Below are positions 14,971-53,475 of a DNA stretch of 64,000 bases, one piece after another. Positions within the stretch are counted from its first letter, which is position 1. Each line of letters opens with the position of its first letter. The position numbers and the translations under genes are program-made. The DNA lies in the sequence record MZ574432.2, one strand, 5' to 3'. The notes beneath the pieces are model-generated. The model was not told the origin of the DNA. It was given only the letters and a program-made list of their open reading frames with translations, and searched no databases.

Positions 14971-14972
14971 TC

Positions 14973-15116
14973 ATGACCAGCCTGCAACGCGCCGGCTACG
15001 AGGCCCAGCGCGCTGGCGTCAAGTGGTGGCACAACCCGCACCCGTCGGGCTCCCCCGCCGCCTATCAATGGGACGAGGGCCACACCTTCGCCCGCCGTTC
15101 GATCACCCCCGTCTAG
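14973..15116 (+). CDS. Rmf/CrpP-like small protein (47 aa), copy 1
   Basis: GYEAQRAG..NPHP..QWDEG pattern resembles the RMF GY.AG..G..CPY..W..GW pattern. Confidence 0.55.
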   Translation: MTSLQRAGYEAQRAGVKWWHNPHPSGSPAAYQWDEGHTFARRSITPV

Positions 15117-15128
15117 GAAAGGCCACCC

Positions 15129-15425
15129 ATGACCGAAGAACCGATTCGCCTGCGGGCCGAGCCCGCCAACATGACCACCGTCGCCGTGGGCGGGGTGCTG
15201 CTGTACTTCTCATATCTGACCCTGGTGGGCTTCCGCTGCCCGCGCCTGGGGACCGTCGTCAACCCCGAGGGCCGGGCCAAGTCCAAGACCACCGCCGCCC
15301 ACATGACCCACTTTGGCCTCAACGCGCCGGGAACGGGTCAATGCAGCACTGAAGAAGACTTTCAGACCCTGGCCATGGGCGCGGTCATGGGTTCGAGCGG
15401 CCCTGATCACCTGTTGCTCAACTAA
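15129..15425 (+). CDS. hypothetical protein (98 aa), copy 1
   Basis: ORF with SD. Confidence 0.75.
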   Translation: MTEEPIRLRAEPANMTTVAVGGVLLYFSYLTLVGFRCPRLGTVVNPEGRAKSKTTAAHMTHFGLNAPGTGQCSTEEDFQTLAMGAVMGSSGPDHLLLN

Positions 15426-15426
15426 C

Positions 15427-15570
15427 ATGACCAGCCTGCAACGCGCCGGCTACGAGGCCCAGCGCGCTGGCGTCAAGTGGTGGCACAACCCGCACCCGTC
15501 GGGCTCCCCCGCCGCCTATCAATGGGACGAGGGCCACACCTTCGCCCGCCGTTCGATCACCCCCGTCTAG
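15427..15570 (+). CDS. Rmf/CrpP-like small protein, copy 2
   Basis: Identical to 14973-15116. Confidence 0.55.
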   Translation: MTSLQRAGYEAQRAGVKWWHNPHPSGSPAAYQWDEGHTFARRSITPV

Positions 15571-15582
15571 GAAAGGCCACCC

Positions 15583-15879
15583 ATGACCGAAGAACCGATT
15601 CGCCTGCGGGCCGAGCCCGCCAACATGACCACCGTCGCCGTGGGCGGGGTGCTGCTGTACTTCTCATATCTGACCCTGGTGGGCTTCCGCTGCCCGCGCC
15701 TGGGGACCGTCGTCAACCCCGAGGGCCGGGCCAAGTCCAAGACCACCGCCGCCCACATGACCCACTTTGGCCTCAACGCGCCGGGAACGGGTCAATGCAG
15801 CACTGAAGAAGACTTTCAGACCCTGGCCATGGGCGCGGTCATGGGTTCGAGCGGCCCTGATCACCTGTTGCTCAACTAA
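15583..15879 (+). CDS. hypothetical protein (98 aa), copy 2
   Basis: Identical to 15129-15425. Confidence 0.75.
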   Translation: MTEEPIRLRAEPANMTTVAVGGVLLYFSYLTLVGFRCPRLGTVVNPEGRAKSKTTAAHMTHFGLNAPGTGQCSTEEDFQTLAMGAVMGSSGPDHLLLN

Positions 15880-16062
15880 AGACCGCTCCAAGGTCTTGGG
15901 CTGTCATCTTCCCGTTAGACTATGACAGCCCAGCCCCGCGAACACTTCCCAACACTCGAAAACACAACCCTGTGTAGAAAGCGATTCCAAGTAATGCGTT
16001 TGATCGAAGGCGGCGGCTTCCTGGCTTTGTGCTTCCTGCTGTGGCTGCTGCACTGAGAAAAC

Positions 16063-16105
16063 TGCAAGAAGGCTGTTGACAGCATCGAGAGCCCATGCGA
16101 CAAAG
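16063..16105 (+). promoter_or_regulatory. early promoter motif
   Basis: GCAAGAAGGCTGTTGACAGCAT..CATGCGAC. Confidence 0.75.
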
Positions 16106-16131
16106 GCCCATCGCAACCGGAGACCGCCGCG

Positions 16132-16398
16132 ATGGCCACCGACTACGACGATTACGGGCAAGACGCCTACGACAATTACGAAGGCTCTGTCATTGACGAG
16201 GCTTTCGAGCGCAACGCCGAAGACGCCTATGAGGACGACCTGGGCGCCGAAGACCCCGACCTCGAATTCCCCGACGAGGAGGACGACGAGGCCGACCTTC
16301 GCCGGGCCGAAGGGCTCATGCCCTGGGCCACCCCCGAGGGCGTGGAGCCGGGGCAGTTCCCCCGCCGCGCCTACGACGACGACGAAATCCCGTTCTAG
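16132..16398 (+). CDS. highly acidic protein ending in an SSB C-terminal-like motif (DDDEIPF)
   Basis: About one third Asp/Glu; C-terminus YDDDEIPF. Confidence 0.8.
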   Translation: MATDYDDYGQDAYDNYEGSVIDEAFERNAEDAYEDDLGAEDPDLEFPDEEDDEADLRRAEGLMPWATPEGVEPGQFPRRAYDDDEIPF

Positions 16399-16403
16399 CG
16401 GGG

Positions 16404-16572
16404 AGGGCCTGGAGCGATCCGGGCCTTTTTCGCGCCGGCCAGCGTTAACCTTAACGCGCGCTTAAGGTTAACCCCGCCCGGACCGTTTTTCGTTTTGGCT
16501 GTCGGGCGGGATTTCGTTTTGTCTGTCGAGTGCAAGAAAGCTGTTGACACGCATCGCAGCCCCATGCGACAA
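16404..16572 (+). promoter_or_regulatory. cassette control element
   Basis: Terminator with the same core as that at 13210 (GGGCCTGGAGCGATCCGGGCCTTTT); GTTAACCTTAACGCGCGCTTAAGGTTAAC; promoter motif. Confidence 0.8.
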
Positions 16573-16600
16573 AGGCTCATCACCAACGGAGGCCTTTTTC

Positions 16601-16900
16601 ATGGCCAGCTACGAGATCACCATTTCGGTTGACGTGTCGGTCGAGGACATCGAACTCCTTTACGCCGCCGCCCTGGCCCGCGCCAAGCAAGAGGGTCAAC
16701 CCGACGACAACGCCGTCGCCCTGCTGACCAATAGCGACCCGCTGGGCCGCCCTGACGTGCCGTCCTGCCTCATGATGCTGTTCGATCCGGGCGTGAGCCC
16801 TGACGGCACCTCGATCAACAACACCGCCGCCAAGCGCGCGGAGTACGACGAGGACGAGGACATGGACGCCTACGAGGAATCCCTGGAGGACGACAAGTGA
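16601..16900 (+). CDS. early hypothetical protein (99 aa, acidic tail)
   Basis: Start MASYEIT after GGAGG. Confidence 0.8.
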   Translation: MASYEITISVDVSVEDIELLYAAALARAKQEGQPDDNAVALLTNSDPLGRPDVPSCLMMLFDPGVSPDGTSINNTAAKRAEYDEDEDMDAYEESLEDDK

Positions 16901-17352
16901 GCTATTCCGGCCCCATCACCATCAGCCAAGGTCTGCGCTGGCGCCTCGATAGCTACGGCAACGGCGCGGCCTATGCGCTCTATGACCTGTCGGCCGGCGC
17001 CAGCGTCTGGATCGACGGCGACGACGCCACCACCTTCCGCGAGGCCCTCGACACGGTCGAAGCGCAACGCCCGCAAGACGAGCCTGACGAAATCCTGGGT
17101 CATCTCTGGGACGAGCACGACTATGGCGCCGCCGCCACGGTGCAGGTTGTCGTCGTGCGCCGGGTGATCCGTGAAGACACCGTCATCGCCTTGCGCCCTG
17201 GCGAGACCGAAGCGCAAGCCAAGGAACGGGCCATCTTCAATCAATCCTCCCTCAAGTGGGATACCTACGACTGCGAATATAGCGCCGACCCCGTCACCAC
17301 CGAGCCGGCGGCCGAATACGACTATCTGCGCCAACTGCCCGGCGCCATCTAA
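16897..17352 (+). CDS. early hypothetical protein (151 aa)
   Basis: GTGA overlap. Confidence 0.75.
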   Translation: MSYSGPITISQGLRWRLDSYGNGAAYALYDLSAGASVWIDGDDATTFREALDTVEAQRPQDEPDEILGHLWDEHDYGAAATVQVVVVRRVIREDTVIALRPGETEAQAKERAIFNQSSLKWDTYDCEYSADPVTTEPAAEYDYLRQLPGAI

Positions 17353-17399
17353 GGCCCTGGCCCGCCCTGACCCGGCGGGCCTTTCTTTCGCCGATCGCC

Positions 17400-17480
17400 G
17401 TTAACCCTAACCGCCCGTTAAGGTTAACGCCAAAGAAACTACAAGAAAGCTGTTGACACGCATAGCGGCCCTATGCGAGA
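17400..17480 (+). promoter_or_regulatory. cassette control element
   Basis: GTTAACCCTAACCGCCCGTTAAGGTTAAC; promoter motif. Confidence 0.8.
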
Positions 17481-17517
17481 ACGTCCCTGCCGCATCGGCG
17501 GCCTGGAGACCTATGCC

Positions 17518-18096
17518 ATGACCCGCGATTTCGTTCCGCACGTCATCACCGCCCGCACCATCGACGGCGCCTGCTATTTCATCGGCGGCCAGTCCTATGG
17601 CGATCACCTGGGCCACGCCCGCGTCATGACCAAGGATGACGCCGAACGCCGCGTCGGCGCCCTCCAGCGCCTGGAGCGCGCCAGCGCCGCGACCCGCCGC
17701 GCCAACGACCCCCATGAGGACGACTTTTCGGGCGTCTATGGCCTCGCCGTCGTGGCCACGACCTGGGAAGCCCTGGACAAGGCCGCCGAGGCGGTCAAGA
17801 CCTGGGAAGAGGCCGACCTTGCCGCCGAGGAGGCTCACGACGCCCTTTATGACGACTATGACCCGAACGAGGGCATGAGCGCCGAGGAGATCGCCGCCGA
17901 AAGCGCGTGGTGGCGCGAGCAGATGGCCAAGGACCAGCCTTTCGCCCCTGGCCAGTCGGTGACCATCACCGATGAGCTTCACCCCGACCACGGCGCCAGC
18001 GCCCGCGTCGTCGAAGCCGAGCAATCGGGCTATCTGGTGCTTGCCCTGGGCGAGCGCCTGACCTGGGGCTTGGCCAAGGGCGTGGCCGCCGCCTAA
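17518..18096 (+). CDS. early hypothetical protein (192 aa)
   Basis: Start MTRDFVP after GGAG. Confidence 0.75.
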   Translation: MTRDFVPHVITARTIDGACYFIGGQSYGDHLGHARVMTKDDAERRVGALQRLERASAATRRANDPHEDDFSGVYGLAVVATTWEALDKAAEAVKTWEEADLAAEEAHDALYDDYDPNEGMSAEEIAAESAWWREQMAKDQPFAPGQSVTITDELHPDHGASARVVEAEQSGYLVLALGERLTWGLAKGVAAA

Positions 18097-18098
18097 AG

Positions 18099-18128
18099 AA
18101 AAAGGCCCTGGCGAGCGCCGGGGCCTTT
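18099..18128. terminator. bidirectional intrinsic terminator
   Basis: AAAAAGGCCC..GGGCCTTT between convergent genes. Confidence 0.7.
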
Positions 18129-18167
18129 CGATCGTAAGCTGTGATTAACCCTAACGCCGCCTTAAGG

Positions 18168-18404
18168 TTAATCCTTGGCCGAGCGACGATGCGGGTTCGA
18201 GCGAAGCCATGTGTCGGCTTCGGTGCGGGTCGAGAACGGCGCCCCGCCAATGCCCGTGGTTCCGTCATCCCATTGGATCGTCCAGCCGACCTGAATGACT
18301 TCCCAGTCCTGGGAGACGCCGAACGGGATCGTAGCATGGATAGGGATACGGTTATGGGGCGGGCGCTTGAGTTGGCGCACCCGCGCCGGGATCACTTGCG
18401 GCAT
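18168..18404 (-). CDS. hypothetical protein (78 aa) inverted relative to the array
   Basis: AGGA SD on the minus strand; WEVIQVGWTIQWDDG composition looks like a real protein; own canonical promoter. Confidence 0.6.
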   Translation of the reverse strand: MPQVIPARVRQLKRPPHNRIPIHATIPFGVSQDWEVIQVGWTIQWDDGTTGIGGAPFSTRTEADTWLRSNPHRRSAKD

Positions 18405-18446
18405 TGGGATTTCCTGTAGGTCAAGCGGAGGCTTGGGCCATCGAGG

Positions 18447-18474
18447 AAAGTACCACGCCGCCGGCCCATGTCAA
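18447..18474 (-). promoter_or_regulatory. canonical sigma70-type promoter for the inverted gene
   Basis: Reverse complement reads TTGACA-N16-TACTTT with a TG extended -10. Confidence 0.6.
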
Positions 18475-18510
18475 GAACGGCGACACGGGTCAAGAAACGC
18501 GGCTCAAGGC

Positions 18511-18551
18511 ACAAGAAAGCTGTTGACACGCATCGCGCCGCCATGCGACAA
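18511..18551 (+). promoter_or_regulatory. early promoter motif
   Basis: ACAAGAAAGCTGTTGACACGCAT..CATGCGAC. Confidence 0.75.
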
Positions 18552-18578
18552 AGGCTCATCACAACAGGGACACCCGCC

Positions 18579-19022
18579 ATGAACCTCGAAGACTGGTTTT
18601 ACCCTTCCTCCGACATCTCCAACTCTGACCAGACCATCGACTCCCGCGACGTCATCAAGCGGGTCGATGAACTGCAAGCCGCTTTCGATGACGCCGAGAT
18701 CGATCCTGATCAGGTGCTCGCCGACGACGAGCTAGACCTGGGCAAGGACGCCGAGGAAATCCGCGACGCCGCCCAAGAGCTTAAGGCGCTCAAGGACTTC
18801 GCCGAGGAGGGCGAGAACTACGCCGCCGACTGGACGAGCGGCGAAACCCTGATCCGAGAAAGCTATTTCGTCGAGTACGCCGAGGAGCTTTGCAAGGACA
18901 TCGGCGTCCTGCCCGACAACATCCCCGGCTATCTGGCCATCGACTGGGAAAAGACCGCCAACAACATCAAGGCCGATTACTCCGAAATCGAGTTTGACGG
19001 CGTCACCTATCTGGTCCGCTAA
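18579..19022 (+). CDS. ArdA-like antirestriction (DNA-mimic) protein
   Basis: Acidic; C-terminal LIRESYF.EYAEEL..DIG..IDWEK..DYSEIEFDGVTY resembles phage ArdA-like proteins. Confidence 0.65.
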   Translation: MNLEDWFYPSSDISNSDQTIDSRDVIKRVDELQAAFDDAEIDPDQVLADDELDLGKDAEEIRDAAQELKALKDFAEEGENYAADWTSGETLIRESYFVEYAEELCKDIGVLPDNIPGYLAIDWEKTANNIKADYSEIEFDGVTYLVR

Positions 19023-25263: not shown

Positions 25264-25365
25264 GGCGCGCCCTGGCCAGCGAAAAAAAGTGCCGTCAACG
25301 CAAGAAAGGCGTTGACGGCATAATCGCTATATGCGACAAAGGCTCATCGGCAACGGAGACACGCC

Positions 25366-25560
25366 ATGACCTTCCACCACAACCTGATGAGCAAGCTGGA
25401 CGCGGCCCAAATGGCGGGCGAAATGACCTACGCCCAACACGCCGACATGCGCGCCACGCTGCGGGCCTCCAACATGCGCGGTCAAGTCTTCACCTCGATG
25501 GATGAACTGCGCAAGGCCTGCAAGGGCGCCGGTCGCGACTTCCAAGGCCGGTTCGCCTAA
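25366..25560 (+). CDS. gene A (64 aa), copy 1
   Basis: MTFHHNLMSK; GGAG SD. Confidence 0.8.
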   Translation: MTFHHNLMSKLDAAQMAGEMTYAQHADMRATLRASNMRGQVFTSMDELRKACKGAGRDFQGRFA

Positions 25561-25580
25561 GACCCCCTCCCCTGAGAGGC

Positions 25581-25766
25581 CCGCCCTAGAGGCGGGCTTT
25601 TTCTTGGCCGTTAGCCTCTCGTTAAGGTTAATCCCCAGGCCCTCTGGGGTTAACCTTAACGCGGCGTTAAGGTTAACCCCGGCGGCCCAGGCCTTAACCA
25701 TGGCAAGGAAAAAAGATCGCTTTCCTGCGAGAAAGCTGTTGACCGCATAAAGGCAATATGCGACAA
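25581..25766 (+). promoter_or_regulatory. terminator + CtrA-like boxes + promoter (recurs in each 885-bp unit)
   Basis: GCCCGCC..GGCGGGC-T5; perfect GGGGTTAACCTTAAC-GCGGC-GTTAAGGTTAACCCC palindrome; promoter motif. Confidence 0.85.
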
Positions 25767-25790
25767 AGGGTCATCAACGGAGCTAGTCCA

Positions 25791-25961
25791 ATGTCCTTCC
25801 GCCTCGCCCTTACCGAAGACGCCCGCTTCACCGCCGCCCGTGGCGCGGTCCGCACCGTCCGCGAGCAAGCCCGCCCGGCGCCGCACAAGGACATTGACGG
25901 CAAGGCCCTGCTGGCGCCCGCCTCGGCGCTGGACCGCATCCGCGCCGTTCTCGGGAACTGA
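25791..25961 (+). CDS. gene B (56 aa), copy 1
   Basis: Start MSFRLAL after GGAG. Confidence 0.7.
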   Translation: MSFRLALTEDARFTAARGAVRTVREQARPAPHKDIDGKALLAPASALDRIRAVLGN

Positions 25962-25964
25962 GTC

Positions 25965-26156
25965 ATGAAGGTCATCGCGCACTATGCCAACGGCCTGCAA
26001 CGGGTCATCCCCTGCGAGACCTCGCAAGAGGCTGTGGCCGCGATCAAGGCGGCTCTGACCTATGATCGCGCCGCCAAGTTCACGCTTGACAAGCGCCTTG
26101 CCTCGGCGATCCCGACCCGCGCCGCCTCCGAACGGGTTTGGCTGTTGAGCGCGTGA
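25965..26156 (+). CDS. gene C (63 aa), copy 1
   Basis: ORF directly after gene B. Confidence 0.7.
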   Translation: MKVIAHYANGLQRVIPCETSQEAVAAIKAALTYDRAAKFTLDKRLASAIPTRAASERVWLLSA

Positions 26157-26250
26157 GGGCGATCGAAAAAAGATCGCCTCACCGCAAAAAACCTGTTGAC
26201 TCGCATAAGGCCCCTATGCGATAAAAGGTCATCGGCAACGGAGACACGCC

Positions 26251-26445
26251 ATGACCTTCCACCACAACCTGATGAGCAAGCTGGACGCGGCCCAAATGGC
26301 GGGCGAAATGACCTACGCCCAACACGCCGACATGCGCGCCACGCTGCGGGCCTCCAACATGCGCGGTCAAGTCTTCACCTCGATGGATGAACTGCGCAAG
26401 GCCTGCAAGGGCGCCGGTCGCGACTTCCAAGGCCGGTTCGCCTAA
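26251..26445 (+). CDS. gene A, copy 2
   Basis: Identical translation. Confidence 0.8.
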   Translation: MTFHHNLMSKLDAAQMAGEMTYAQHADMRATLRASNMRGQVFTSMDELRKACKGAGRDFQGRFA

Positions 26446-26674
26446 GACCCCTCCCCTGAGAGGCCCGCCCTAGAGGCGGGCTTTTTCTTGGCCGTTAGCC
26501 TCTCGTTAAGGTTAATCCCCAGGCCCTCTGGGGTTAACCTTAACGCGGCGTTAAGGTTAACCCCGGCGGCCCAGGCCTTAACCATGGCAAGGAAAAAAGA
26601 TCGCTTTCCTGCGAGAAAGCTGTTGACCGCATAAAGGCAATATGCGACAAAGGGTCATCAACGGAGCTAGTCCA

Positions 26675-26845
26675 ATGTCCTTCCGCCTCGCCCTTACCGA
26701 AGACGCCCGCTTCACCGCCGCCCGTGGCGCGGTCCGCACCGTCCGCGAGCAAGCCCGCCCGGCGCCGCACAAGGACATTGACGGCAAGGCCCTGCTGGCG
26801 CCCGCCTCGGCGCTGGACCGCATCCGCGCCGTTCTCGGGAACTGA
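26675..26845 (+). CDS. gene B, copy 2
   Basis: Identical translation. Confidence 0.7.
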   Translation: MSFRLALTEDARFTAARGAVRTVREQARPAPHKDIDGKALLAPASALDRIRAVLGN

Positions 26846-26848
26846 GTC

Positions 26849-27040
26849 ATGAAGGTCATCGCGCACTATGCCAACGGCCTGCAACGGGTCATCCCCTGCG
26901 AGACCTCGCAAGAGGCTGTGGCCGCGATCAAGGCGGCTCTGACCTATGATCGCGCCGCCAAGTTCACGCTTGACAAGCGCCTTGCCTCGGCGATCCCGAC
27001 CCGCGCCGCCTCCGAACGGGTTTGGCTGTTGAGCGCGTGA
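26849..27040 (+). CDS. gene C, copy 2
   Basis: Identical translation. Confidence 0.7.
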   Translation: MKVIAHYANGLQRVIPCETSQEAVAAIKAALTYDRAAKFTLDKRLASAIPTRAASERVWLLSA

Positions 27041-27134
27041 GGGCGATCGAAAAAAGATCGCCTCACCGCAAAAAACCTGTTGACTCGCATAAGGCCCCTA
27101 TGCGATAAAAGGTCATCGGCAACGGAGACACGCC

Positions 27135-27329
27135 ATGACCTTCCACCACAACCTGATGAGCAAGCTGGACGCGGCCCAAATGGCGGGCGAAATGACCTAC
27201 GCCCAACACGCCGACATGCGCGCCACGCTGCGGGCCTCCAACATGCGCGGTCAAGTCTTCACCTCGATGGATGAACTGCGCAAGGCCTGCAAGGGCGCCG
27301 GTCGCGACTTCCAAGGCCGGTTCGCCTAA
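27135..27329 (+). CDS. gene A, copy 3
   Basis: Identical translation. Confidence 0.8.
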   Translation: MTFHHNLMSKLDAAQMAGEMTYAQHADMRATLRASNMRGQVFTSMDELRKACKGAGRDFQGRFA

Positions 27330-27559
27330 GACCCCCTCCCCTGAGAGGCCCGCCCTAGAGGCGGGCTTTTTCTTGGCCGTTAGCCTCTCGTTAAGGTTAA
27401 TCCCCAGGCCCTCTGGGGTTAACCTTAACGCGGCGTTAAGGTTAACCCCGGCGGCCCAGGCCTTAACCATGGCAAGGAAAAAAGATCGCTTTCCTGCGAG
27501 AAAGCTGTTGACCGCATAAAGGCAATATGCGACAAAGGGTCATCAACGGAGCTAGTCCA

Positions 27560-27730
27560 ATGTCCTTCCGCCTCGCCCTTACCGAAGACGCCCGCTTCAC
27601 CGCCGCCCGTGGCGCGGTCCGCACCGTCCGCGAGCAAGCCCGCCCGGCGCCGCACAAGGACATTGACGGCAAGGCCCTGCTGGCGCCCGCCTCGGCGCTG
27701 GACCGCATCCGCGCCGTTCTCGGGAACTGA
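27560..27730 (+). CDS. gene B, copy 3
   Basis: Identical translation. Confidence 0.7.
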   Translation: MSFRLALTEDARFTAARGAVRTVREQARPAPHKDIDGKALLAPASALDRIRAVLGN

Positions 27731-27733
27731 GTC

Positions 27734-27925
27734 ATGAAGGTCATCGCGCACTATGCCAACGGCCTGCAACGGGTCATCCCCTGCGAGACCTCGCAAGAGG
27801 CTGTGGCCGCGATCAAGGCGGCTCTGACCTATGATCGCGCCGCCAAGTTCACGCTTGACAAGCGCCTTGCCTCGGCGATCCCGACCCGCGCCGCCTCCGA
27901 ACGGGTTTGGCTGTTGAGCGCGTGA
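27734..27925 (+). CDS. gene C, copy 3
   Basis: Identical translation. Confidence 0.7.
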   Translation: MKVIAHYANGLQRVIPCETSQEAVAAIKAALTYDRAAKFTLDKRLASAIPTRAASERVWLLSA

Positions 27926-28019
27926 GGGCGATCGAAAAAAGATCGCCTCACCGCAAAAAACCTGTTGACTCGCATAAGGCCCCTATGCGATAAAAGGTCA
28001 TCGGCAACGGAGACACGCC

Positions 28020-28214
28020 ATGACCTTCCACCACAACCTGATGAGCAAGCTGGACGCGGCCCAAATGGCGGGCGAAATGACCTACGCCCAACACGCCGAC
28101 ATGCGCGCCACGCTGCGGGCCTCCAACATGCGCGGTCAAGTCTTCACCTCGATGGATGAACTGCGCAAGGCCTGCAAGGGCGCCGGTCGCGACTTCCAAG
28201 GCCGGTTCGCCTAA
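28020..28214 (+). CDS. gene A, copy 4
   Basis: Identical translation. Confidence 0.8.
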   Translation: MTFHHNLMSKLDAAQMAGEMTYAQHADMRATLRASNMRGQVFTSMDELRKACKGAGRDFQGRFA

Positions 28215-28444
28215 GACCCCCTCCCCTGAGAGGCCCGCCCTAGAGGCGGGCTTTTTCTTGGCCGTTAGCCTCTCGTTAAGGTTAATCCCCAGGCCCTCTG
28301 GGGTTAACCTTAACGCGGCGTTAAGGTTAACCCCGGCGGCCCAGGCCTTAACCATGGCAAGGAAAAAAGATCGCTTTCCTGCGAGAAAGCTGTTGACCGC
28401 ATAAAGGCAATATGCGACAAAGGGTCATCAACGGAGCTAGTCCA

Positions 28445-28615
28445 ATGTCCTTCCGCCTCGCCCTTACCGAAGACGCCCGCTTCACCGCCGCCCGTGGCGC
28501 GGTCCGCACCGTCCGCGAGCAAGCCCGCCCGGCGCCGCACAAGGACATTGACGGCAAGGCCCTGCTGGCGCCCGCCTCGGCGCTGGACCGCATCCGCGCC
28601 GTTCTCGGGAACTGA
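28445..28615 (+). CDS. gene B, copy 4
   Basis: Identical translation. Confidence 0.7.
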   Translation: MSFRLALTEDARFTAARGAVRTVREQARPAPHKDIDGKALLAPASALDRIRAVLGN

Positions 28616-28618
28616 GTC

Positions 28619-28810
28619 ATGAAGGTCATCGCGCACTATGCCAACGGCCTGCAACGGGTCATCCCCTGCGAGACCTCGCAAGAGGCTGTGGCCGCGATCA
28701 AGGCGGCTCTGACCTATGATCGCGCCGCCAAGTTCACGCTTGACAAGCGCCTTGCCTCGGCGATCCCGACCCGCGCCGCCTCCGAACGGGTTTGGCTGTT
28801 GAGCGCGTGA
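28619..28810 (+). CDS. gene C, copy 4
   Basis: Identical translation. Confidence 0.7.
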   Translation: MKVIAHYANGLQRVIPCETSQEAVAAIKAALTYDRAAKFTLDKRLASAIPTRAASERVWLLSA

Positions 28811-28904
28811 GGGCGATCGAAAAAAGATCGCCTCACCGCAAAAAACCTGTTGACTCGCATAAGGCCCCTATGCGATAAAAGGTCATCGGCAACGGAGACA
28901 CGCC

Positions 28905-29099
28905 ATGACCTTCCACCACAACCTGATGAGCAAGCTGGACGCGGCCCAAATGGCGGGCGAAATGACCTACGCCCAACACGCCGACATGCGCGCCACGCTG
29001 CGGGCCTCCAACATGCGCGGTCAAGTCTTCACCTCGATGGATGAACTGCGCAAGGCCTGCAAGGGCGCCGGTCGCGACTTCCAAGGCCGGTTCGCCTAA
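28905..29099 (+). CDS. gene A, copy 5
   Basis: Identical translation. Confidence 0.8.
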   Translation: MTFHHNLMSKLDAAQMAGEMTYAQHADMRATLRASNMRGQVFTSMDELRKACKGAGRDFQGRFA

Positions 29100-29329
29100 G
29101 ACCCCCTCCCCTGAGAGGCCCGCCCTAGAGGCGGGCTTTTTCTTGGCCGTTAGCCTCTCGTTAAGGTTAATCCCCAGGCCCTCTGGGGTTAACCTTAACG
29201 CGGCGTTAAGGTTAACCCCGGCGGCCCAGGCCTTAACCATGGCAAGGAAAAAAGATCGCTTTCCTGCGAGAAAGCTGTTGACCGCATAAAGGCAATATGC
29301 GACAAAGGGTCATCAACGGAGCTAGTCCA

Positions 29330-29500
29330 ATGTCCTTCCGCCTCGCCCTTACCGAAGACGCCCGCTTCACCGCCGCCCGTGGCGCGGTCCGCACCGTCCG
29401 CGAGCAAGCCCGCCCGGCGCCGCACAAGGACATTGACGGCAAGGCCCTGCTGGCGCCCGCCTCGGCGCTGGACCGCATCCGCGCCGTTCTCGGGAACTGA
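29330..29500 (+). CDS. gene B, copy 5
   Basis: Identical translation. Confidence 0.7.
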   Translation: MSFRLALTEDARFTAARGAVRTVREQARPAPHKDIDGKALLAPASALDRIRAVLGN

Positions 29501-29503
29501 GTC

Positions 29504-29695
29504 ATGAAGGTCATCGCGCACTATGCCAACGGCCTGCAACGGGTCATCCCCTGCGAGACCTCGCAAGAGGCTGTGGCCGCGATCAAGGCGGCTCTGACCT
29601 ATGATCGCGCCGCCAAGTTCACGCTTGACAAGCGCCTTGCCTCGGCGATCCCGACCCGCGCCGCCTCCGAACGGGTTTGGCTGTTGAGCGCGTGA
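29504..29695 (+). CDS. gene C, copy 5
   Basis: Identical translation. Confidence 0.7.
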   Translation: MKVIAHYANGLQRVIPCETSQEAVAAIKAALTYDRAAKFTLDKRLASAIPTRAASERVWLLSA

Positions 29696-29789
29696 GGGCG
29701 ATCGAAAAAAGATCGCCTCACCGCAAAAAACCTGTTGACTCGCATAAGGCCCCTATGCGATAAAAGGTCATCGGCAACGGAGACACGCC

Positions 29790-29984
29790 ATGACCTTCCA
29801 CCACACCATGATGAGCAAGCTGGACGCGGCGATGATGTCGGGCGAACTGACCTACGCGCAACACAGCGACATGCGCGCGGCCCTCCGCGCCGCCAACATG
29901 AGCGGCCAAGTCTTCACCTCGATGAACGAGCTTCGCGCCGCTTGCAAGGGCGCGGGTCGCGACTTCCAAGGCCGGTTCGCTTAA
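29790..29984 (+). CDS. gene A' (64 aa), diverged paralogue of gene A
   Basis: MTFHHTMMSKLDAAMMSGELT.. versus MTFHHNLMSKLDAAQMAGEMT.. Confidence 0.8.
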   Translation: MTFHHTMMSKLDAAMMSGELTYAQHSDMRAALRAANMSGQVFTSMNELRAACKGAGRDFQGRFA

Positions 29985-30008
29985 GAGCCGGCAACCTTAC
30001 TGACCAGA

Positions 30009-52451: not shown

Positions 52452-52967
52452 ATGACGTCGCAGATCAGCACTGAACGGATCGCTCAGATCATGCGCGAGC
52501 AGACCCTGCGGCGTCTGGCCTTGGAAAACCCCTGCCGTCCGTGTGGCGCCCTTGGTCGTGTCAAGATCGACGACACCGAGGACGCCGACGGCTACTACGA
52601 GACCAAGGACTGCGAGCACTGCAAGGGCCGAGGCTGGTTCAAAAAGACGCTGGACGAGGTCATGGCCATGCGCTTTGGCCCCGAGTGGCCGACCCGCCTG
52701 ACCCTAGAGCAGAAGCTTCGGGCCTTGGAGAACCGCTTCTACAACCGAGCGACCTGGGAGCCCAAACCCGGCGATCTCTACACCACCAGCCGCGCCGATT
52801 TGGAGCTTTACGAGGTCGTCGATGTTGCCGACGGACATATTTGCACACGCTACCGGACGCAACCGGACGGGGCGATCTCGCGGTGGCCGGCGGAAGAGTT
52901 CCTCGCCGAGCACACCTTCGGACACGCAAGGACCCACGTACCCAATTGGGTCATCGCCTTTTCCTAG
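52452..52967 (+). CDS. zinc-finger-containing hypothetical protein (171 aa)
   Basis: DnaJ-like CxxCxxxG twice. Confidence 0.7.
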   Translation: MTSQISTERIAQIMREQTLRRLALENPCRPCGALGRVKIDDTEDADGYYETKDCEHCKGRGWFKKTLDEVMAMRFGPEWPTRLTLEQKLRALENRFYNRATWEPKPGDLYTTSRADLELYEVVDVADGHICTRYRTQPDGAISRWPAEEFLAEHTFGHARTHVPNWVIAFS

Positions 52968-53475
52968 GGGACAGCATCGCGTCTGGCCGGGCAAGTTTGC
53001 CCCGTTCGAGCGCGGCTGCTGCCGCTGGTGCGGCGCCACTATCCTGCGGGCCGACGGCACGGTCAACCGGCGCAAGCAGTTTTGCGATCGCCACTGCGTC
53101 AACGAGTTCCTGCTGCGGACCGATCCGCAGCGCTGGCGGCGCAACTGCTACAAGGAGTCGATGGGCATCTGCCATCGGTGCAGCGAGGTCTTCGACTATT
53201 ACGAGGACGACGGATGGGAGGCCGATCACATCGTGCCCCTCTACCACGCCCACCGGATCGGCGACTGGACCGCCTGGGACCCCGAGAACCTCCAGCTTCT
53301 CTGCATCCCCTGTCACAAGGACAAGACGCAGGAAGACTACGACACCTACGGCCGGCCCTGGCTGGACGAAAGCCCCGACGTGCTGCCCACCAGCGACCAG
53401 CCGCACCCGGATGATCTGCCTGACTTCGGCGAAGAAGACGAAATCGACTTCGACGCCGATGAAATCCCATTCTAA
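52822..53475 (+). CDS. HNH endonuclease (start uncertain) with an SSB-Ct-like tail
   Basis: C..C..ADHIVPL..ENLQLLC..CH..KT; ends DFDADEIPF. Confidence 0.8.
   Translation: MLPTDIFAHATGRNRTGRSRGGRRKSSSPSTPSDTQGPTYPIGSSPFPRGQHRVWPGKFAPFERGCCRWCGATILRADGTVNRRKQFCDRHCVNEFLLRTDPQRWRRNCYKESMGICHRCSEVFDYYEDDGWEADHIVPLYHAHRIGDWTAWDPENLQLLCIPCHKDKTQEDYDTYGRPWLDESPDVLPTSDQPHPDDLPDFGEEDEIDFDADEIPF

Follow-up and report, generated by a model that had tools for sequence, protein, structure and literature searches.

The hypothetical protein gp032 of Caulobacter phage BL47, encoded at positions 16132–16398 (+) of the 64,000-nucleotide (nt) window that we analyzed from sequence record MZ574432.2, is small and very acidic and ends in DDEIPF, the six residues that also close the single-strand DNA-binding proteins (SSBs) of its host's bacterial family. 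We propose that gp032 is probably an early, disordered decoy whose tail would dock in the SSB-tip pockets of host proteins, a reading drawn from sequence to which we give about an even chance of being right. The SSB tip serves bacteria as the hub that brings over a dozen enzymes of replication, repair, and recombination to single-stranded DNA (ssDNA), as two papers set out (PMC10018359, PMC5872125).

A megablast search with positions 15000–19000 of the window returned BL47 at 100%, and the coordinates of the window are those of the record. BL47 is a member of the genus Bertelyvirus (Dolichocephalovirinae) with a record of 326,794 base pairs (bp) and Caulobacter vibrioides CB15 as host. The gene, CcrBL47_gp032, lies inside the 30,174-bp terminal repeat and is therefore present in two copies in the packaged genome. 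It runs from an ATG start to a TAG stop and encodes 88 amino acids. In this genome of 64% GC, codon position 3 of the gene reaches 84% GC against 36% for position 2, and this pattern fits a real coding frame; the minus strand and the other frames hold overlapping open reading frames (ORFs), which are the usual artifacts of high-GC DNA. The protein contains 18 D and 14 E (32 D/E in 88 residues, 36%), five R, and no K or H, for an isoelectric point (pI) of ~4.05 and a net charge of about −27 at pH 7. It can be divided into three parts. Residues 1–55 (16132–16296, +) form a polyanionic, aromatic-studded, and helix-prone N-terminal part with 25 D/E, a single R, and seven F/W/Y. Residues 56–80 (16297–16371, +), here called the pre-tail segment, are invariant and rich in P and G (7 of 25 residues), carry two RR pairs and an MPW motif, and have a net charge of +1. 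The acidic tip YDDDEIPF follows as residues 81–88 (16372–16395, +), its last six residues being the host-type SSB tip. The first-pass annotation, made from the letters of the DNA, had described an 88-residue ORF with about one-third D/E that ends in YDDDEIPF, which is what we found. It had also noted no basic surface, which is nearly right, save that four of the five arginines make up the two RR pairs of the pre-tail segment.

We compared the tip with those of bacterial SSBs. Among the best 120 matches of a protein search started from a Phenylobacterium SSB, 119 Phenylobacterium-like (Caulobacteraceae) SSBs had DDEIPF as their C-terminus, and 99 ended in DLDDEIPF. When bacterial genomes were scanned for DDEIPF plus a stop, the matches listed were mainly alphaproteobacterial SSBs, two of them from Phenylobacterium, again Caulobacteraceae. 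The SSB of Caulobacter phage Sansa (CPT_Sansa75) also ends in DDEIPF, and a 2026 paper gives LDDEIPF as the SSB tip in 5795 of 18841 alphaproteobacterial assemblies (PMC13490951). No Caulobacter record was among the 120 matches listed in the genome scan; the organism-named proteins among the best 120 matches to the Phenylobacterium SSB were all Phenylobacterium or unclassified, with no Caulobacter; and neither the Sansa SSB cluster, which is a singleton, nor a tblastn search of plasmids gave a Caulobacter SSB record. The match between the gp032 tip and that of the host SSB, read from family relatives, a Caulobacter phage SSB, and the published consensus, is strong but indirect. To that extent, the first-pass proposal that the tail mimics an SSB C-terminus was borne out, as the tip is that of the right kind of SSB.

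Coincidence does not account for the ending. From the residue frequencies of the phage itself, about 9e-6 proteins in about 520 would be expected to end in DDEIPF, and the chance of two BL47 proteins ending in DEIPF is ~8e-9. Across the six frames of the unique genome (bases 1–297000), only two of 4131 stop-to-stop segments of at least 40 amino acids end in DEIPF, and both are annotated genes: gp032 and an HNH endonuclease described below. Chance as the origin of the BL47 tips is excluded.

Conservation of gp032 is concentrated at its C-terminal end. Between BL47 and either CcrBL9 or CcrSC (82–84% identity), the last 33 codons hold 0 non-synonymous and 5–7 synonymous differences, against 11–14 non-synonymous and 2–5 synonymous differences in the preceding 42 codons. 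All 11 Bertelyvirus records share one and the same C-terminal module, meaning the tip with the 25 residues ahead of it, and no significant match to this module was found outside those records. Purifying selection is therefore concentrated on the C-terminal 33 codons, and the tail and pre-tail segment are the constrained part of the protein. The N-terminal part varies in sequence across the lineages while its composition stays at 25–26 D/E and six or seven aromatics, as expected of a polyanion rather than of a specific fold. A more diverged relative was present on a 7.5-kb metagenomic contig (L004:3856–4212, Logan SRR27946880), where it was called as a 118-amino-acid ORF without the tail. A single apparent frameshift inside the gene, possibly an assembly error, removes the tail from that ORF; another frame of this DNA, read by itself, encodes DDDEIPF and a stop after a diverged pre-tail stretch. 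Loss of the tail in homologs had been named in the first-pass annotation as part of what would speak against mimicry, and the opposite was found: the tail is kept in 11 of 11 Bertelyvirus records with only synonymous changes, and the diverged contig still encodes DDDEIPF followed by a stop.

These data also bear on whether gp032 has a function at all. It has no match to a Pfam, PHROG, or PADLOC family, and a word-indexed search of 5.8e9 proteins together with a full phmmer search of 1.84e9 representatives gave only the Bertelyvirus copies and one metagenomic relative. The one further hit, a 2108-amino-acid protein that gp032 matched in four acidic stretches, was rejected as compositional. An orphan without a family, with an apparent frameshift within the gene in its one metagenomic relative, might be a spurious or decaying ORF with a coincidental ending. 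That explanation is close to refuted, given a chance of ~1e-5 or lower for the ending, coding-like GC at the codon positions, a cassette conserved in four lineages, and exclusively synonymous change in the last 33 codons.

The gene sits in a compact cassette. An exact match to the promoter-like motif GTTGACA-N11-CCATGCGACAAAGG is found at 16075–16106 (+), and a spacing of 25 nt separates the motif from the start codon in BL47, CcrBL9, CcrSC, and the metagenomic contig alike. Its two boxes appear to resemble the Caulobacter sigma-73 promoter consensus. When up to three mismatches were allowed, the window contained 16 copies (0.01 expected), all on the plus strand and all within 1–30174; a strict scan of bases 1–297000 gave 11 copies, all on the plus strand and all between 2852 and 21162. 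A GGAG at 16119–16122 (+), 9 nt before the ATG, reads as the likely ribosome-binding site. Downstream, a terminator-like hairpin (16398–16433, +) has a 16-bp stem, a 4-nt loop, and a U-run in its 3′ arm, and the RNA fold of 16396–16500 reached −48.7 kcal/mol (z = −2.1). The cassette is closed by the palindrome TTAACCTTAA-N7-TTAAGGTTAA at 16445–16471 (+), which may act as an additional terminator hairpin or as a regulator's operator. This palindrome occurs 18 times in the window (0 expected), all within 3314–29215; it follows most cassettes of the terminal repeat and lies 3′ of the gene in CcrBL9, CcrSC, and the metagenomic contig as well. The next promoter-like motif begins at 16543. A scan for sigma-70 and simple terminator consensus sequences listed neither the motif nor the hairpin of this cassette, both of which were identified by direct pattern search and folding. 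The order of motif, gene, and palindrome, including the 25-nt spacing, is kept in CcrBL9, CcrSC, and the metagenomic contig. Within a block of cassettes that have host-type promoters, gp032 thus forms a monocistronic unit, with motif, GGAG, hairpin, and palindrome flanking it in a layout common to its relatives, as the first-pass mention of a cassette of its own had anticipated. From its position and promoter type, early expression is a reasonable inference.

We then considered what the protein itself might look like. In isolation, gp032 is predicted to fall far on the disordered side, with a charge–hydropathy value of 0.364 against a boundary of 0.523. An AlphaFold2 model built from a two-sequence alignment had low confidence (predicted local distance difference test, pLDDT, of 57; predicted template modeling score, pTM, of 0.18), with helices predicted at residues 5–16, 23–37, and 49–59 in the acidic part and residues 60–88, the C-terminal 29, modeled as coil. 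A model with a pLDDT of 57 is too weak for comparing folds, and any matches to it would be meaningless. The best match in a sequence search of the PDB was insignificant (E = 0.8).

An acidic protein of this kind invites comparison with DNA mimics. T7 Ocr, ArdA (PF07275), and SPO1 Gp44 are small, very acidic, early proteins that occupy sites meant for nucleic acid (PMC2806950, PMC4872106, PMC8208478), and gp032 resembles them in its size and in its high density of carboxylates, with 32 D/E in 88 residues. Counter-defense of the Ocr or ArdA kind, in which the polyanionic body would block restriction or other DNA-binding defenses and the tip would be accessory, would accord with the 36% D/E and pI of ~4, with the helices predicted in the acidic part, and with an early-type cassette near a weakly ArdA-like gene. 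We nevertheless judge it quite improbable. The strongest constraint falls on the non-acidic pre-tail segment and the tip and not on the acidic body, which sets gp032 apart from these mimics; it has no similarity to Ocr, ArdA, or any family, with no sequence match in Pfam, PHROG, PADLOC, or the PDB; and modeling gave neither a confident structural likeness to them nor a confident fold with a DNA-like array of charges. What would make gp032 a DNA mimic is its composition only.

Nor is gp032 an SSB. Its likeness to bacterial SSBs (PF00436) consists of the identical last six residues with the terminal Phe, preceded by a P/G-rich and probably disordered segment. The oligonucleotide/oligosaccharide-binding (OB) fold was tested for and is absent from this 88-residue protein, which has no Pfam or PHROG match and matches SSB by tblastn in six residues only. 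Further differences are that residue −7, counted from the C-terminus, is D in gp032 and L or F in SSBs, and that the pre-tail segment is invariant, whereas SSB linkers vary. The Sansa SSB and other SSBs borne by phages and plasmids are similar to gp032 in being proteins of mobile elements with a host-type tip that presumably engages host SSB partners. They differ in that the Sansa protein is a complete SSB, 65% identical to Phenylobacterium SSB, whereas gp032 shares only the six-residue tip. The idea that gp032 is the remnant of a captured ssb gene was rejected, as the similarity is limited to those six residues. A degron or an export signal was rejected too; we know of none that looks like the DDEIPF tip.

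A search of BL47 for an SSB of its own was also negative. No bacterial-type SSB was found in the unique genome by tblastn with Phenylobacterium SSB, which matched only the last six residues of gp032. The best candidate from tblastn (L010:32865–32951, E = 0.06) was rejected because it is interrupted by stops. Pfam searches of ten unannotated replication-module proteins identified no SSB of any type, a check that is not exhaustive. The phage does encode a T7-like DNA polymerase (gp192), helicases, a ribonucleotide reductase, and about 30 tRNAs. Either BL47 relies on the host SSB or it has an ssDNA-binding protein of an unrecognized type. With no SSB detected by these searches, the ssDNA of the phage is likely to encounter the SSB of the host and the proteins that partner it.

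The second tip-bearing protein is the HNH endonuclease, whose ORF spans 52822–53475 (+) and ends in DFDADEIPF. It is the only other BL47 protein that ends in DEIPF by the segment search described above, and it matches Pfam HNH (5e-8) and phrog_11604 (1e-39). The annotation covers only 53161–53475 (gp120, 104 amino acids), and the match to the HNH family starts ~190 nt upstream of that start. The longest ORF, from 52822, overlaps gp119 (52452–52967) by 146 nt in another frame, and from 52960 to about 53030 no in-frame start codon occurs. The acidic linker and tip of this protein (53353–53472, +) are an extension seen only in Bertelyvirus and one close metagenomic relative: CcrSC has them (P0124), as does the metagenomic protein P0125, which carries one residue more at its terminus. 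They are absent from the more distant homologs P0126 and P0127 and from the proteins of phiCbK, CcrRogue, and Brevundimonas phage Marchewka, all of which end in basic or neutral residues, those of the phage orthologs (phiCbK, CcrRogue, and Marchewka) being basic. Among the phages examined, the gp032 and HNH tails are both limited to this lineage. A third BL47 protein, gp510 (291656–292210 of the record; L010:35656–36210), annotated as a "DNase H-like domain protein" and assigned to phrog_12078, has a long acidic run and a terminal LF; this third acidic, Phe-ended tail is not of the IPF type.

Several acidic tails in one phage recall T7. The helicase-primase gp4 of T7 has an acidic C-terminal docking tail, and several proteins of this one phage share the device. 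The SSB of T7, gp2.5, has an acidic, unstructured tail with an essential terminal Phe that acts as a docking peptide, and a preprint states that this tail, with its terminal Phe, binds the T7 polymerase and helicase (10.64898/2026.02.22.705581). The likeness of gp032 to gp2.5 and gp4 is an acidic tail that ends in an aromatic residue; the difference is that the T7 tails are carried by DNA-binding or enzymatic domains, dock on the phage polymerase, and do not copy a host tip, whereas gp032 has no such domain. BL47 might have a comparable internal hub: gp032, the HNH nuclease, and gp510 would each dock, through an acidic tail ending in Phe, on a basic patch carried by a phage replication protein such as the polymerase gp192, and gp032 would regulate or compete there. 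The T7-like polymerase and the helicases of BL47 fit such an arrangement, as does the terminal LF of gp510; the gp032 and HNH tails, both innovations of this phage lineage, also share an aromatic residue at −8 and a D at −7, unlike SSBs. We still give the hub a low probability. The tip is host-type DDEIPF letter for letter, which goes beyond a mere acidic tail with Phe; gp032 belongs to the terminal-repeat cassettes, at a distance of over 110 kb from the replication module; and tails of unrelated phages copy the bacterial tip too.

That last point comes from scanning IMG/VR for DDEIPF directly before a stop, which returned at least 120 ORFs (loci L132–L251); all 120 listed were searched against Pfam. 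Four unrelated SSB-type families were represented, by 25 canonical SSBs, five Enc34-type and five T7-type ssDNA-binding proteins, and one SSB_1. The others with a family were four superfamily 2 (SF2) helicases, three archaeo-eukaryotic primases (AEP), two AAA_5 ATPases, one ERF recombinase, and four Pam3 gp34-like proteins, and the majority had no family. A few (L201, L219, and L221) are small and acidic (pI ~4.1) with no evident DNA-binding domain, of which only one reaches 25% D/E, versus 36% in gp032. In bacterial genomes, too, a few non-SSB proteins end in DDEIPF (L079 and L094). To judge from these sequences, the host-type tip is a portable docking peptide on many unrelated phage proteins, and gp032 appears as the extreme case, with almost nothing beyond the peptide and a polyanion. 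If non-SSB phage proteins that end in DDEIPF and a stop are taken as an informal class, gp032 belongs to it, and we count the BL47 HNH protein in as well.

The same sample raises the question of whether gp032 recruits rather than blocks. As an adaptor, it would capture a host SSB-interacting enzyme through the tip and tie that enzyme, through the rest of the protein, to a phage or host component, redirecting it to or away from phage DNA. In the viral sample the tip is mostly fused, as a handle, to working enzymes (helicases, primases, ATPases, and a recombinase), the HNH nuclease of BL47 bears it too, and the invariant 25-residue pre-tail segment could be a second binding site. An N-terminal part with no recognizable domain and fast sequence change is unlike a specific second interface, and nothing points to a second partner. 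Such hijacking seems to us unlikely on balance.

In the decoy mechanism that we propose, gp032 would probably be made as an immediate-early protein from the host-type promoter in the terminal repeat and would be disordered when alone. Its working part would be the invariant C-terminal 33 residues (16297–16395, +), that is, the P/G-rich stretch and DDEIPF with its free C-terminal Phe, the tip that the host-family SSB itself uses for recruiting partner enzymes. With no DNA-binding or catalytic domain and a net charge near −27, gp032 could not replace SSB on DNA. In the infected cell, its tip would dock in and fill the SSB-tip pocket of at least one SSB-interacting protein, and an enzyme occupied in this way would be uncoupled from SSB-coated DNA. 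Because gp032 would be unable to bind DNA and has no enzyme domain, occupation of the pocket is the simplest outcome. Affinity and target choice would probably gain from further contacts made by the invariant 25-residue pre-tail segment, and the polyanionic, aromatic-studded N-terminal part may fill the nucleic-acid site of the target, a bivalent binding that would imitate SSB-coated ssDNA. The time of expression, the binding, the identity of the target, and the inhibitory outcome are all points that we infer. In E. coli, the SSB partners include ExoI (exonuclease I), RecQ, PriA, and RecO. Defenses that sense phage SSBs are also known (DARNA, DRT4, and Retron-Eco8); the accessible portions of their descriptions do not state that the IPF tip is recognized.

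Several points weigh against the decoy mechanism. The host match rests on family relatives and not on the C. vibrioides SSB itself, and the structure model of gp032 has low confidence (pLDDT of 57). Position −7 is hydrophobic (L) in SSBs, whereas in both gp032 and the HNH protein this position is D and position −8 is aromatic; the tails of the phage may thus be adapted to another pocket, perhaps on a phage protein. Pockets that receive the SSB tip bind its terminal carboxylate. An 80%-identical relative of the HNH protein (L252:1501–1920, Logan SRR22868754) ends in DADEIPFG, so that the Phe is not terminal and that carboxylate would be buried; the extra codon may reflect either true variation or a mistake in assembly. 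Enzymes are the main carriers of the tip in the viral sample, which argues for recruitment over blocking. Finally, a monomer with one tail must compete with an abundant, tetrameric SSB, and titration would need high expression or extra contacts, both of which we assume. The first-pass annotation had envisaged a decoy that hijacks or blocks SSB-interacting replication and repair proteins, or defenses that sense SSB. This interpretation was partly supported, by tip identity, tail conservation, and the second tailed protein; the binding, the partner, the blocking or hijacking action, and any effect on a defense are proposals.

Other features of the terminal repeat surround the cassette. Two cassettes downstream of gp032, gp037 (18468–19022) has a weak Pfam match to the antirestriction protein ArdA (E = 3e-4, 21.7 bits against a cut-off of 27) and also matches phrog_25535; the ArdA match hints at counter-defense genes in the block of cassettes. 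Directly upstream of the gp032 cassette lies a perfect 454-bp tandem duplication (14972–15879, 2.0 copies, 100% match), which makes gp028/gp029 and gp030/gp031 identical pairs. Close relatives align across this region in two pieces, with ~450 fewer bases over the same query, which suggests that they carry one copy of the 454-bp unit. At the inner end of the terminal repeat, from about 25300 to 30000, a unit of ~885 bp is repeated five times, giving five copies of a three-gene set (gp049–gp064), with the promoter-like motif at 25738, 26622, 27507, 28392, and 29277 and the palindrome at the same period.

We found no precedent for a phage mimic or decoy of the SSB tip in the searchable literature, an absence that is not proof of novelty. 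A wider claim would be that, with gp032, a viral decoy dedicated to the bacterial SSB tip is described for the first time: a free copy of the tip fused to a nucleic-acid-like polyanion, by which an early phage program disconnects or captures the SSB-dependent repair, restart, or nuclease enzymes of the host, or a defense that depends on them, as one case of a wider, so far undescribed motif mimicry in which phages attach the tip of the host SSB to many unrelated proteins. This we put forward tentatively, as possible but on the doubtful side of even. The copying of short linear motifs is, to our knowledge, well known for eukaryotic viruses and hardly documented for phages. On the sequences gathered here, gp032 appears to be a clean, conserved example of a phage mimicking a motif, limited to a single small genus of phages. 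If the proposed role is correct, phages would attack or exploit the SSB hub by copying a short linear motif, and gp032 would be a small ligand of natural origin with which to map the SSB-tip pockets of an alphaproteobacterium. It would also help to explain why the same tip is found on helicases, primases, nucleases, and unrelated SSB folds of uncultivated phages.

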